A DNA stretch of 63,480 bases, filler included, from Reticulomyxa filosa (lineage: Eukaryota; Protista; Foraminifera): the NCBI GenBank assembly GCA_000512085.1. It is 14 parts of 14 records of this genome, joined end to end, with 100 filler letters (N's around TTAATTAATTAA, not from the genome) between each part and the next. Parts side by side here need not be neighbours in the genome. Positions count along the whole stretch, not along the records: positions 51,667 to 57,528 come from ASPP01010945.1; 13 more parts are not named here. One strand, given 5' to 3'. The number at the start of each line of letters is the position of its first letter. Position 1 is the first letter of the stretch. Below are positions 51,860-58,948 of this stretch, in pieces. Under the pieces are notes generated by a model. The model made no database searches and was not told where the DNA came from. It was given only the letters and a program-made list of their open reading frames with translations. The position numbers and the translations under genes were made by a program.

Positions 51860-52207
51860 ATGGGATTTATCGGAAAATTAATTTTGTTTGGCTCTGGAGG
51901 TTTGTTTTTTTTTTCAAAATACATAAATCAAAACAAAAACAAAGTTGGGGTGGAATGTCAGTGGCAACGGGAATTTACTTAGATCAAAAAAAGGTGTGGA
52001 TGCCTCGTATGGATCGATTCATTGAGCGAGCGTCTGAGAGGTAAGACTTGTTTTCAATCCAAGCCTATTTCATTATAGATCCTCTTCTTTTTCGTACACA
52101 GATTTGAACCAGAAGCAAAAGAGATAACTCGTCAGATCTTAACAGCAGTTGGAAGTATCAATTCATCTAAGGACAGCGAAAATGATTCTAGTAAAAAAGG
52201 CAAATAA
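51860..52207 (+). CDS. 81-aa single-TM microprotein, STMP1/DUF4535-like; 3 exons, absent from the ORF track
   Basis: Exons 51860-51903, 51945-52040 and 52102-52207 (GT-AG introns of 41 and 61 nt) splice in frame to MGFIGKLILFGSGGFWGGMSVATGIYLDQKKVWMPRMDRFIERASERFEPEAKEITRQILTAVGSINSSKDSENDSSKKGK*. Confidence 0.65.
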
Positions 52208-52677: not shown

Positions 52678-53071
52678 CTATTGCTGAGAGGTTTTTTTGT
52701 TCAGGCAATATTTTTGCAAACCAATGCCAATACCAATTCCAACGAGAACGCAAACAACGGAATGCACTCCAATGCTGTTGCAGATCGACAAGCAGGACTT
52801 CGAGCTTCCACAGCAACTCGACTTAGCAGATTTGGCGTCACTGCCACATTTGCAATTTGGTCCGCATGAACAACAACTGTTTCCAAAAACATTAATATAC
52901 ATACACGATAGACCCAAAAAAAGAAAAGCGTTGGTACCTGCAGGGCTCGCAGTTGCACGGATCACAGGAGCAGCACGTACACCTGTAACCAACAACACTG
53001 GTTCGAAAGAAAACATTAGAATAGAGAGAAAAACAAAACTTCTTGGAACTAACGCTTTTTGATTCAGACAT
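52678..53071 (-). CDS. 96-aa metallothionein-like Cys-rich protein with C-terminal hydrophobic anchor; 3 exons
   Basis: Exons 53071-53040, 52997-52938 and 52876-52678 (GT-AG introns of 42 and 61 nt, both ending CAG) splice in frame to MSESKSVSSKNVVGYRCTCCSCDPCNCEPCSCCSCGPNCKCGSDAKSAKSSCCGSSKSCLSICNSIGVHSVVCVLVGIGIGIGLQKYCLNKKTSQQ* (18 Cys). Confidence 0.8.
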
Positions 53072-53992
53072 GTTAACAATAATAGACTGTGATCAAGAAT
53101 AAATGATAAAAAATTTTCTCGCAACCGTACATATCCCTAAAAAAAAGTTTATTTCAGTTGTACTCAAAACTATTTGTATTTTTCACATCGAAATAATATT
53201 ACACTTTGAACGATTAAATGATATAATAATCGATAATTGTAGACTTTGAACAACTCATAACAATAGACAGTAAAATAGCATCTTAAATAAGCAACCAGTG
53301 AGTTAAACTCTCACAACAACACTTTCTCTTTTCTTGTTTTCGTTGAATTCTTTGTCATTCGTACATTATTTTCATTAATTAATTTCGTTTTACTAAATTT
53401 TTTTTTTTGGAATAAAGTTCCTTCGTATTACACTTAGTTGACATAGTAATTTACAATTATAATAAATCACTAAGGTGAGTCCCAATAACATTTGTAAGTT
53501 TATTTATGAAAATAGATTTTTTAATTTGTTCAAATATCTCGAAAAAACAAAATAAAATGTTAGTGTTTTAGATTTTAATACAGGAACGAATTATTAACTT
53601 TCAAATTTTCAAAAAATGAAAAATAAAATCAATTGTTAACATTATGTGTAAATTGAACAATTAGAACACTTTAGATTAAAACTGAAAAGACAGTCCTGTG
53701 AAGCAATAAAAAATGAACATATACCAATTGATCCATTAAAACGTTCCGATACAATTTTAGAAGCGATCATGTCAAGATGCATAACAGCCAATAGACTGAA
53801 CGTCAAAAAACTCAATTAAAAATCAGTGTTGTTTTTGTGTTATGAAATTTCAATTTTGGTTTGTGGGTTGAAAAAAAAAAATTGATAGATTTGTTGTTAC
53901 ATATATGCTTTTAAGACATTTTGTTTTTAAATATCGAAGTTATGTTTAAAGTTATTTACAAAGACAAGTCAAATATAACGACATTTGTTGTA

Positions 53993-56430
53993 TCATTTTC
54001 GTCTTTTTCTCCGTCTTTGTTGTGTAGTCTTCAATTGTAATGAATTTTTGAGTTTATTTGATTCACTGTGATTTTCGGAGCGACTTTGTGCAGAACGATT
54101 GACAATGCAATGATTGGCCCCCCATTCAGGAAAAATAGAAAAGAGCCTTAAATCCTTGCTCTTTCGTAGTGATCGGACGCGATCTTTGAGTTGGACATTG
54201 GTTTTGTCTTTCAAAATCGGTCCAAATTCAGGATCCAGTTTAATATTGCGATAAATATGCTGCATATCCCACTTGTATTTGGATAGCCCTTTGTACAGGG
54301 CATTCGTTTCTTCGTGCGTGAACAGTTTTCTCTGCTTTCTCGTCACTGGATCCTCTTGTGCGATTTTACGTTTCTTCGCCGGGTGTTCGCAGTATTTTTT
54401 TTCTTCCAATGTCTTTTGATCACTTTCGCATTCTTGTTCTTCACAACGGCGTCGTTTGCTCTTTACCATTCTTTTATTTGTTTATTAGATCCCCCATACA
54501 CACATGTACATATATGTGGATTGTTAACTCTTGATCAACAAATATATATATGTGATCCTTATTTATGGAAGACTTAACGGTTGCCCATAAAAGAACTGGT
54601 CCAAAGAGGATACTTTGGGGTCAGTGTTTTCATCGACAGTATTGTTCAATTGTTTCAACGGCAATGTCTTGTTTGGACTGGGCTTTGAATCAACGTGTGG
54701 CCTTTCTTCTTTCGGACGCTCAAGCCCGACAACAAACTCTGCAGAATGCAAGCGAATCGTGTCAAACCCTTCACGTCCTACCAAGGGGCCATCCAAAGGC
54801 GTTGTCACAATGTCACTTTCATTCACGCTTTCAACGCGGCCCCGAAACACCACTGAGCAAAACGGTACCTTAACGCGGACCACTTGCCCTTGTGCAATAT
54901 CTGCTGGCCAATTCTTCTCTTTACCCCGGTCAAGGATGTCAGTATATCAAGTCACCCACACACACAAAAAAAAATGCTTGACATATGAACATTTGCTGAC
55001 ACAGCAAAAAAAAAAAAAAACAACAACCCCTTTGAAGGACGTTTTTGGACAAAAAATGTTGCTATTCGTTTTTGTTTGACAAACATCAAACTTTGTTGTT
55101 TTTGATTGGACTCTGCTGCGATCGAAATGGGATCATCTTTGTGATTACCTTGGAACTCAGGAATGGTGGAGGGTTGGTTTTGTGGGCTTGGTGGAGTCAA
55201 TTCAAAGGCCTGGCTATTCAGTTCGATGTCCACAAGCGATCCCGAATATTGGTCGTTCCAGACACTTTCCTCTTTGCTCGTCTCCGTTGCGTCGCTTTGC
55301 AATGACATTGGAGGCGCAGCAGAGTCGTCGATCACATTGCCTTTGTCTTCTGGTGCATCAAGTCGAAATCCACCTTGTATGGCTGCCAAGCACTTACTTC
55401 CGATCGTCGACATCGACTCACAAAAGTCACTCCATTTGTACTTTTTCAACAGCCGTTCGTCTTCCAATTCTTCCCTCGTTTTCCCCGCCAAATTTTTCAC
55501 CTTTTTTTTTTTCACATTTACAAACATATCCGTATTATATACATATATACATATATACATGTATGTACATATATAATAAACAAAGGACGAACTCGAAGAA
55601 TATCACGACAAGTGATATTAGTGCTAAAGCATCTGTCAATCAGACCAATAAACTCCTCTGGGTTGGACGTCATTAAATCGGTACAACTGAGGAAGGCCTG
55701 TTGTCAACAATGTATTTATAATAAATAATTAACACATATTCGAATGATCGATCTTGTTCAAACATTTCCTCACTTTAATAAATAATAAATACATACGTAT
55801 ACATATATGTATGTACATATATGTGTATACGTGAATAGCAAATGTATCGATTTGAGAGTAGAGCAATGTGCCATTATCGCATTGATTGATAATAAGCAGA
55901 CAATAATCGTAGAGCAACCCGAGTGTTTTGTAAAACCATCGTTGCTGTGCTATATCCTTTGGACGACGAAAATAAACATCGTATTCCAGCCCACTCTGTT
56001 TCGAGGGGTGGCTTGTCTTGCACAGTTCAACTATGTGCGCCAATGCCAAATAATATTGTTTTGGCTGATCGACAACATCATACCAGTCACTGATGTCAAC
56101 CATTTCTTTATTCACTCCACAATCTCGCAACAATGCTAATCATTTACCATTTTTTTTTTTTTTTAAATGTTTGCAAAAGATATGTTATATCACATTAGAC
56201 GTAATTGCGCGATATTATTTCTTTTTTTTTTTTCTCCAAAAGTTCTGGACGATATCCGAAAAAATTAACATTTTACAAGAACACAACAAAAAGCCCGAAA
56301 AAAACAACCCTGTGCCTCGTTGTGAGATTTATGCATTAGCAAGTTCACCACAGCCAATTGATTCTCTTGTGAAAGTTGATTTTGATAGTTCTTTGGTGTT
56401 TTGTCATTGCCAATAATGGATATGAACATT
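53993..56430 (-). CDS. TRF-like telomere-repeat-binding protein (C-terminal Myb/telobox), multi-exon; start approximate
   Basis: Last exon RKQRKLFTHEETNALYKGLSKYKWDMQHIYRNIKLDPEFGPILKDKTNVQLKDRVRSL resembles the telobox (R/K-T-x-V-x-LKDxxR). Upstream exons encode a helical region, an acidic linker and a small beta-rich domain. Confidence 0.75.
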
Positions 56431-56992
56431 GCATACAATTTCAAACCTTTTTTTTTTGGACCAAAGAAACCAAACGAATTTGTTGCGTTGATTTTAGCTA
56501 TTTTTGGGATTGCTTTTATTTGTGTCATTTTTATGTTTCTCTATTATACACACCTTGGAGGAAGTTGCTTTTTTTCGTATGCACTAACGCTTCCCCAAAC
56601 AGAAACAATTAATAAATCCTTTTCTTTCCTATTCCTATGTTATCCACAAAAATGTTTAGTGTGACGAAGTGGAAGAATTATCGTTAAAATAAACATTCTT
56701 TCGAAAAAAGCAAATCTTCAATAGTAACGCATAGAAAATAGCCTCACAACGACATTAAGATAAATCAAAATTCAATTTGTTGCTATCTACACTTGTTTTT
56801 TGTCCAAAGCATTAAATTTATCATTTTCCTTTTTTTGTTCTGTTTTTTTTTTTGGAATAAAAAAATCTAGAGTCGGTTGACATGAAAGAAAAAGTAAGAT
56901 TTACTGATAACAAAAAAAGGAAAAGTGTAGTATTTTTTCCAAAAAAAAAATACTACACTTTTCACAAAAGATGGTCATTATTTTGTTTTTTT

Positions 56993-57508
56993 TTAAGAAA
57001 AATCTCGTCTACGAACACGCTTCACATTGCTTGTACCAGCATTAGTTTGAGTGGCAGATTTTTCATCAAACTTGTGTATGATATACTTGGTATTTAAGAT
57101 GGTTACCGTGGTCTATGTAATCAAAGTGAGATCAAAGATGTATTTTTATCCGTTCCGCATGGATAAAAGAGAGAGAAAAGAAATCTAAAGAACTGAAGAG
57201 CTGGTAGGAATTCTTTCAATTTGAGCCGAAATATCAGGATCATAGGGTTTGAAGGTATCATCATTATCCTTCCATTCTGTCCGTCCCAAAAAAAAAAAAA
57301 AAAAAAAAAAAAAAGGAATTTTTTCTCATTTTGTAAGTATTGCAAAAGAAAGAGAAGAGATCACACACAGATACTGCTAACCCCAAACAAACTTGGCTTC
57401 GACTCGACGAATGATTCGTTTTTTTTTAGTGTGCACATTAGTTAGGAGGCAAGTGAATTTGTTTATCTTTTCCACCTCATATATATTTTTTCCATGGCTC
57501 GTCTTAAT
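56993..57508 (-). CDS. 3' end of a tandem WWE-domain protein; 3 exons, absent from the ORF track, 5' part lost in gap
   Basis: Exons 57508-57382, 57276-57194 and 57112-56993 splice in frame to IKTSHGKNIYEVEKINKFTCLLTNVHTKKKRIIRRVEAKFVWEWKDNDDTFKPYDPDISAQIERIPTSSSTTVTILNTKYIIHKFDEKSATQTNAGTSNVKRVRRRDFS*. Confidence 0.75.
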
Positions 57509-58948
57509 CTTTTTTTTTTTTTTTTTTTNNNNNNNNNNNNNNNNNNNNNNNNNNNNNNNNNNNNNNNNNNNNTTAATTAATTAANNNNNNNNNNNNNNNN
57601 NNNNNNNNNNNNNNNNNNNNNNNNNNNNCACTTTGAAATGAAAAAAAATTGTTAAATGGGGTACATCCCCCCCGTCTCCGAAAGGAGTTGAAGAGGTTTG
57701 TAATTTATTAATTTTTTTATTTTTAATATATTAAATTGTGATTTGTTTTATAATAGATGTCCCCAGCATATTAAAAAAAAAAAGTTTTATCCTTACCCTC
57801 CCTCATCTATGATAGAAAATAATGGGTTGAAGTCCAACCCGCATGGAAAAATAAAAAAAAGGGTTTGTACATTTGTTTGTATTTTTGTATTTATTATAAA
57901 AAATATGACTTTGTTTGTCCTTATCAATAGGCATGCCCCAATCAATGAAAAAATGTATTTATTTGCTCCCCCCCCCTTTTTATACACAAAAATGTTTTGT
58001 TTGATGCATTGCATCATGCTCAAGAAAAAAATAGGAATTGGAGTGGAAATTATGGCCAGGTTCCGTTCGACTAAAGTATTGTTTTCGTTTGTTTTTTTTT
58101 GTTTAAAAAATAAAAACATTATTTGTTGTTTTACAGACGTTCAAGATTCAATGCAAAGGAAAAATATTGGAAAAATAATAATAGAAGGGTGGGATAATAA
58201 ATTTGGGAAAATAATGAAAAAAATAATTAGAAAAAAGGGTGGAAAAGAATGGAAAAAATGGGGAAAAGAATATGAAAAAGAATGGGAAAAATGATGAAAA
58301 TAATGGGGAAAAAGAATGGGAAAAGGGTTAAAAAAATAAAATAAATGAAGAAAAATAAAAAAGGAAAAAATTATTAAAAAAAAAGAAAAAAACGTTGCGG
58401 TTCTGACAGTTAATTATCTTTTTTTTTTCATTTGTCTTTATTTAAAATCTAAAAAATGTTTGATGATGTATAGAAAGATTAACGTTCACGCAAACGCGCA
58501 AAATTTAAATGGATTTTTCGTGACTTTTCGAACAAGTTGTATCCAATTGGACTTTGGAAATGGCTTGGAACAAATACTTCAATTTTGGCATCATTCATTG
58601 GACCAAATGATTAAGTTATTTATTTCTTTTTTGCTGATCAAATAAAAAAATCTCTTTTGTTATTGAACGGTGTGCAAAACGATTTGCATTTTTTCTCTCT
58701 GTCATACTATAGGCAGCAAGACTGGAAGAATTTAATTGAATGGCATATCTGTTATCACATTGTCAATGTTAAAATCATACTTTATTTTTTTGCATTAAAA
58801 AAAANNNNNNNNNNNNNNNNNNNNNNNNNNNNNNNNNNNNNNNNNNNNTTAATTAATTAANNNNNNNNNNNNNNNNNNNNNNNNNNNNNNNNNNNNNNNN
58901 NNNNAAAAAAAAAAAGAAAAGCAATAACACACAAAGATAAGCCAGGAA

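Follow-up and report, generated by a model that had tools for sequence, protein, structure and literature searches.

Metallothioneins are viewed as soluble buffers. Some features of the protein described here recall two other groups: the cysteine-string proteins, which contain a J domain and have hydrophobic residues within the string, and the HIPPs, prenyl-anchored metallochaperones of plants in which an HMA domain is combined with a lipid anchor. The former are alike in keeping a dense Cys cluster by the membrane and the latter in tethering a metal-binding domain to it. As for metallothioneins anchored to a membrane, they are known mainly as engineered constructs, namely surface-display metallothioneins designed for bioremediation, in which a fused membrane anchor raises local metal binding (reviewed in PMC8911655). 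The nearest natural analogue of the present protein is the CYSTM family (PF12734; Venancio and Aravind, 2010; PMC2804304), whose members are likewise small (<150 aa), tail-anchored, eukaryotic and Cys-rich, and which would also share the role proposed below. In CYSTM proteins, 5–6 cysteines, with 3–4 of them consecutive, lie inside the transmembrane helix, which is followed by an acidic residue and preceded by a Pro/Gln-rich head (Venancio and Aravind, 2010; PMC2804304).

Here we report on a locus of Reticulomyxa filosa that probably represents a real orphan gene of unusual, apparently undescribed architecture. The window, i.e. the whole stretch of DNA that was analysed, is 63,480 nucleotides long, and the locus lies within a 5.9-kb piece of it (ASPP01010945.1), on the minus strand. 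The gene has three proposed exons and is seemingly unannotated. Its features, together with two that overlap it, are the following.

53071–53040, minus strand: proposed exon 1, the least secure part of the model (32 nt; GC 0.34).
53039–52998, minus strand: proposed intron 1 (42 nt; GTTTTG...ACCAG; GC 0.31; T-rich).
52997–52938, minus strand: exon 2 (60 nt; GC 0.57).
52937–52877, minus strand: intron 2 (61 nt; CAG/GTACCA...AAACAG/T; GC 0.33; T-rich).
52876–52678, minus strand: exon 3 (199 nt including the TAG stop; GC 0.45).
52876–52780, minus strand: first part of exon 3 (residues 31–63, 9 Cys), comprising the second block of cysteines plus a Ser/Lys/Gly/Ala linker.
52773–52717, minus strand: hydrophobic segment of exon 3 (residues 66–84), a predicted single C-terminal transmembrane anchor.
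52716–52678, minus strand: end of exon 3, a 12-residue tail (three Lys, one Cys) and the TAG stop at 52680–52678.
52720–52742: tandem repeat of a hexanucleotide (ATTGGY as read on the minus strand, 3.8 copies), encoding the Gly-Ile run of the anchor.
52697–53062, plus strand: antisense open frame of 121 codons, spanning the whole locus.

In a preliminary description of this DNA it had been proposed that the three minus-strand exons join in frame, through two GT...CAG introns, to encode a protein of 96 aa with 18 Cys, 12 of which fall within residues 17–41. When the exons were joined by script the same product was obtained, from 291 nt corresponding to 96 codons plus the stop, and all the counts proved correct on recomputation (Cys at positions 17, 19, 20, 22, 25, 27, 30, 32, 33, 35, 39, 41, 52, 53, 59, 63, 73 and 88). 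The accompanying remark that the ORF track shows only the last exon is right in that exon 3 is covered by a 148-codon open frame (53124–52678) and the whole gene is in no single ORF, but a 59-codon ATG ORF (53071–52892) covers exon 1, intron 1 and exon 2. The locus is an example of the very small genes with several exons that annotation based on ORFs overlooks.

The Cys-rich head of the protein comprises 47 residues (17–63), 16 of which are Cys (34%, with 19% for the whole protein). The cysteines are arranged in six CxC, three CC and two CxxC motifs, the first block (residues 17–30, with 7 Cys in 14 codons, from 52981 down) being borne by exon 2. Phe, Tyr, Trp and His are absent from residues 17–63, where what separates the cysteines is limited to Ser, Thr, Asp, Pro, Asn, Glu, Gly, Lys, Ala, Leu and Ile; between those of residues 17–41 the choice narrows to Ser, Thr, Asp, Pro, Asn, Glu, Gly and Lys, none of them hydrophobic or aromatic. 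Metallothioneins are recognised by a low molecular weight, a Cys content of about 15–35% and CxC, CC and CxxC arrays free of aromatic residues and His, and the composition of the present protein agrees on each of these points. Classical metallothioneins, such as the vertebrate alpha- and beta-domains, are alike in their small size, in a Cys content comparable to the 34% of the head, in CxC/CC/CxxC spacing, in having Ser, Lys, Gly, Asn, Asp and Pro between the cysteines and in lacking aromatic residues and His in the cluster; they are soluble, whereas the present protein has a predicted C-terminal hydrophobic anchor. With the exons searched separately, no match was found in the Pfam metallothionein families at E up to 1 or 10, nor in any PDB chain at E up to 10. 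The term “metallothionein-like” used in the preliminary description is borne out by composition and Cys spacing; as neither of the Cys-bearing exons is matched by a curated family or by a solved metallothionein, the term describes composition only. On present evidence the protein would be metallothionein-like on paper and is not filed in any metallothionein family.

The hydrophobic segment that follows the head (residues 66–84) averages 2.27 on the Kyte-Doolittle scale over its 19 residues, which exceeds the classical threshold of 1.6, and has a marginal sum of +1.4 kcal/mol on the Hessa scale, owing to the five Gly, one His and one Ser that it contains. The segment also includes one Cys (residue 73) and a GxGxGxG run. 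The hexanucleotide repeat that underlies the Gly-Ile run suggests recent slippage, and the origin of this part of the anchor in a repeat speaks against the reading proposed below. GxxxG is a known helix-packing feature, and with two overlapping GxxxG motifs in the Gly-Ile run self-association of the anchor would be possible. Beyond the segment, the tail of 12 residues has a charge of about +3, with three Lys, as originally noted for a short basic tail after one C-terminal hydrophobic segment, and neither Asp nor Glu. The model contains no N-terminal signal sequence and no other transmembrane segment, and by hydropathy its single C-terminal segment (66–84 of 96 residues) with a short tail agrees with how tail-anchored proteins are defined by sequence. 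The sole database echo of the segment is a sub-threshold match to PF09527, a small transmembrane protein family (E 0.056 and 0.0049). AlphaFold2, run on exon 3 as a single sequence, gave a low-confidence result (pLDDT 67, with one of five models above 52) and drew the anchor as strands, with no helix, which we take as uninformative and not as speaking against a helix.

As to the destination of the anchor, the published rules come from mammals and yeast. Among mammalian tail-anchored proteins the mean tail charge is 6.0 for peroxisomal proteins, 2.5 for those shared by peroxisome and mitochondrion, 1.1 for mitochondrial and 0.2 for ER proteins (Costello et al., 2017; PMC5450235); in yeast, ER tail-anchored proteins have a transmembrane GRAVY above 1.75 (PMC5450235). 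The same paper demonstrates that a very hydrophobic segment (2.4) can outweigh the tail charge and direct the protein to the ER. The tail charge of about +3 is close to the shared peroxisome/mitochondrion class of mammals (2.5). The anchor had been called moderately hydrophobic, which was overstated, given that its mean of 2.27 exceeds the yeast ER threshold; likewise, the mitochondrial-outer-membrane or peroxisomal signature that had been read in it is not clear, since a GRAVY of 2.27 and a tail of about +3 point in different ways. By these rules, the predicted destination is ambiguous.

When the head and the anchor are considered together, the differences from the systems mentioned above become apparent. 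In CYSTM the cysteines are inside the membrane (PMC2804304), while here they are in the soluble head: the CYSTM helix holds 5–6 Cys against the single one (residue 73) of the present segment, the acidic residue that follows the CYSTM helix has no counterpart in the present tail and, with respect to the Pro/Gln-rich CYSTM head, the whole present protein contains 3 Pro and 3 Gln. No PF12734 match was obtained for exon 3 (E up to 1) or for the open frame of 148 codons (E up to 10). The engineered anchored metallothioneins rely on the same tethering principle as proposed for the present protein; they are, however, artificial fusions, mostly displayed outside the cell, while here a natural gene would be concerned, with the head on the side of the cytosol. 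Neither the J domain of the cysteine-string protein DNAJC5 (no DnaJ match in Pfam) nor the HMA domain and lipid anchor of the HIPPs is present. In full-text literature searches on tail-anchored, transmembrane or membrane-anchored metallothioneins, no description of a natural protein built in this way was found; what these searches gave were CYSTM, the plant PLAC8/PCR proteins, Cys-rich surface proteins of diplomonads and the engineered surface-display fusions.

The reading that we put forward, tentatively and at somewhat less than an even chance, is that the locus is a lineage-restricted small minus-strand gene for a tail-anchored protein with a metal-binding head. The gene would consist of two or three exons encoding 91–110 aa (96 in the model of the preliminary description). 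The anchor would emerge from the ribosome only after termination, and the product would then be inserted post-translationally as a tail-anchored protein, leaving the Cys head in the reducing cytosol; it is the 12-residue tail, with no signal sequence in the model, that would place the protein among the tail-anchored ones by definition and hence make the head cytosolic and reduced. For a head in this state, thiolate metal binding would be, we infer, the most natural chemistry, and its thiols would most probably gather Zn, Cd or Cu into metal-thiolate clusters, the product acting as a membrane-tethered metal buffer or donor. The more specific claim, i.e. that this is a natural membrane-tethered metallothionein whose thiolate cluster would hold about four metal ions, or more, at the plasma membrane or an organelle, facing the cytosol, appears rather doubtful. 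If it were true, cells could confine thiolate metal buffering to one membrane surface, and the protein would buffer metal locally, or pass it on to a transporter, instead of serving as a buffer for the cytosol in bulk. The locus would then offer a compact natural anchor-plus-chelator module, and the GxGxGxG anchor might build oligomers of the membrane-tethered metallothionein.

A different use of the cysteines has to be considered in this context. S-acylation is common at cysteines that flank or lie within membrane anchors, and Cys 59, 63 and 73 flank the present anchor or sit in it. Gene and anchor could thus be real and the cysteines serve not as a metal buffer but as S-acylation sites, of the cysteine-string or SNAP25 type, or as redox or Fe-S ligands, in which case the head would adhere to the membrane or sense the redox state. 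That no metallothionein profile or solved metallothionein matches the protein fits this alternative, to which we assign a rather low probability. Residues 17–41, with no hydrophobic or aromatic residue between their cysteines, are instead in the style of metallothioneins and not in that of cysteine-string proteins, and neither a J domain nor any other partner domain was found in Pfam.

No relatives of the predicted protein were found in the collections searched exon by exon. Exon 3 (65 aa) found none in a word-indexed protein collection of 5.8 billion clusters, and the ESM Atlas, JGI metagenome contigs, GTDB genomes and IMG/VR viral contigs were likewise blank for it. With phmmer, exon 3 gave two matches among 1.84 billion protein representatives, both to long repeat proteins and both spurious, being weak matches of 15–45 residues multiplied by repetition. 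As phmmer was run without a length limit, no predicted protein of that collection contains exon 3, either because the gene is unannotated or because the proteins of this genome are outside the collection; exact look-ups of five ORFs of the piece were blank too, which fits either case. Exon 2 holds 19 whole codons, and the unspliced 59-codon ORF was used in its place for the protein searches, with no match in Pfam or PDB; no metagenome contig matched a degenerate DNA pattern of 27 nt that represents the motif of exon 2. Altogether, the exons, searched separately, matched no Pfam family (CYSTM included) and no PDB sequence, and the statement that the architecture is not one already described stands, as none like it was found in Pfam, PDB, the protein collections or the literature. 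The locus is thus a single-locus orphan with no conservation to reveal selection, and being such its value is limited for now.

The splice model differs in security from one part to another. Its well-supported core is regarded as being intron 2 with exons 2 and 3. Whichever of the six frames is read, a density of at least 6 Cys per 25 stop-free codons is reached at just two places in the 5.9-kb piece, and these are adjacent, on the same strand and in different frames, with a 61-nt spacer in between. This arrangement is the best evidence that the sequence itself offers for the gene. The spacer is T-rich, with a GC of 0.33 against 0.57 and 0.45 beside it, and has GT and AG at its ends, by which it resembles an intron; it is intron 2, which changes the frame by one and is needed by every model that links both Cys blocks. 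We consider it quite likely that exons 2 and 3 truly code for protein and belong to a live gene.

Exon 1 and intron 1 are more open to revision. The exon consists of an ATG (53071), the first one past an in-frame stop, followed by 10 codons and 2 nt, which encode a hydrophilic, Ser/Lys-rich N-terminus, and its GC (0.34) is not above background. The donor of the intron (GTTTTG) is weak. Being free of stops and divisible by three in length, the intron is read in frame when retained and yields 110 aa, while an alternative acceptor 15 nt downstream (52983/52982, TTACAG/G) makes a 57-nt intron and a product of 91 aa. Cys head and anchor are kept in all three versions (91, 96 and 110 aa). As many as 1159 combinations of one or two GT..AG introns are open from this ATG to this stop, and hence in-frame joining alone proves little. 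A branch-point-like TAATGTTTT is found in intron 1 (53018–53010) and in intron 2 (52894–52886), with its branch-like A 15–18 nt upstream of the acceptor in both, and has no other copies in the piece, which is weak support because the motif was picked after being seen.

These uncertainties bear on the possibility that the Cys-rich exons are coding but belong to a gene that is incorrectly modelled or in decay. The first exon might be another one, perhaps with a signal peptide that would lead to an extracellular, disulfide-bonded head, or the locus might be a relic of a larger Cys-rich gene. Besides the weak support for exon 1 and intron 1 and the many in-frame alternatives, the failure to find relatives agrees with it, as does a short hydrophobic ATG exon at 53720–53683 with a phase-2 donor. 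The latter was the sole hydrophobic candidate when 53992–52998 was scanned for alternative exons that begin with ATG and have a donor of the right phase, and no convincing upstream signal-peptide exon in the required phase was found in that interval: the candidate has 12 codons, lies in AT-rich DNA (GC 0.22–0.27) and requires a 685-nt intron, far exceeding the 42–133 nt of the introns seen or inferred here, which makes it an unlikely first exon. Also against this possibility, the model of the preliminary description is intact from ATG through stop. All considered, an incorrect model or a decaying gene is an unlikely explanation.

The locus is also crossed, without interruption, by the plus-strand ORF of 121 codons listed above, which could in principle be the real gene, with the minus-strand model as its antisense shadow. 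Its GC at the three codon positions (0.50, 0.41 and 0.37) is nearer to that of the neighbouring coding ORFs than that of the minus-strand model, and it has A > T like the coding strand of the neighbours; the proposed coding strand has more T than A, the reverse of the neighbouring coding exons, as would follow from T-rich Cys, Ser, Val, Ile and Gly codons. A synonymous-codon likelihood test, trained on neighbouring ORFs, lacked power, since it did not distinguish frame or strand even for the training ORFs, and its result was discarded. The plus-strand ORF found neither a Pfam match nor a homologue, long frames of the antisense kind are frequent in this DNA (five comparable ones run over the neighbouring gene), and it leaves unexplained why two Cys-dense frames on the opposite strand are separated by a low-GC spacer bounded by GT and AG. 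We therefore regard it as very unlikely to be the gene, and as most likely a shadow of the minus-strand gene.

Lastly, the chance occurrence of the two Cys blocks was estimated with 20,000 dinucleotide-preserving shuffles of the 394-nt region, which retain its TG-rich dinucleotide content. One Cys-dense window (7 or more Cys per 25 codons) appeared in approximately 10% of the shuffles, two Cys-dense frames on one strand in 33 of the 20,000. A repeat scan found no tandem repeat beneath the Cys blocks, and GC reaches its maximum over the locus (0.46, with flanks at 0.22–0.29). A chance arrangement within TG-rich DNA with nothing functional in it, with which the frequency of single Cys-dense frames and the complete lack of external support of any kind would agree, is the least probable explanation and a highly improbable one, given the rarity of paired frames, the absence of an underlying repeat and the way in which start, stop and splice signals coincide with the peak in GC and with a protein of coherent layout.

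Other features were observed within the same piece. A tRNA scan, phage BLAST and an ESM Atlas search with a neighbouring exon were blank, as was Rfam apart from the sub-threshold matches given below. A small convergent gene lies on the plus strand at 51955–52207, with an ATG at 51955, 28 codons, an intron, 34 codons and a TAA at 52205–52207; it has no Pfam match. Its likely intron (52041–52101; 61 nt, GTAAGA...CACAG) has the same length as intron 2 and the same ACAG type of acceptor. An upstream ATG at 51861, also on the plus strand, opens a Gly-rich hydrophobic stretch, for which in-frame joining to the 51955 gene was not achieved.

Upstream of the locus, a probable multi-exon gene on the minus strand (53993–56133) shows five open stretches of 51–202 codons with a GC of 0.40–0.50, separated by putative introns of 68–133 nt with GTA-type donors, the exon joins being guessed. 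The last stretch (54469–53993, 158 codons) has a weak SANT/SLIDE-like match (E 0.011), and its 158-aa product found no homologue within the length range searched. Five plus-strand ORFs of 110–164 codons, between 54615 and 56139, are antisense to the coding stretches of this neighbour, which indicates that such frames should not be taken as genes unless they have other support. In putative introns of the same gene, AT-rich repeats of the TATATACA/GTATATAC type (55536–55575 and 55790–55830) gave weak, sub-threshold matches to mir-297 in Rfam, which are almost certainly compositional.

In the remaining part of the piece, an 87-codon ORF on the plus strand (56401–56664), in a region with GC 0.31–0.33, has no Pfam match and encodes a strongly hydrophobic stretch of about 24 residues. 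On the minus strand, a 34-codon open stretch (57188–57289) has a near-threshold match to the start of the WWE domain (PF02825; E 0.0016, score 19.2 bits, cut-off 21.1); it follows immediately on a homopolymer run of 27 bases. Runs of A or T of 15–27 bases are found at 55006–55020, 56150–56164, 57288–57314 and 57510–57528, one of which ends the piece.
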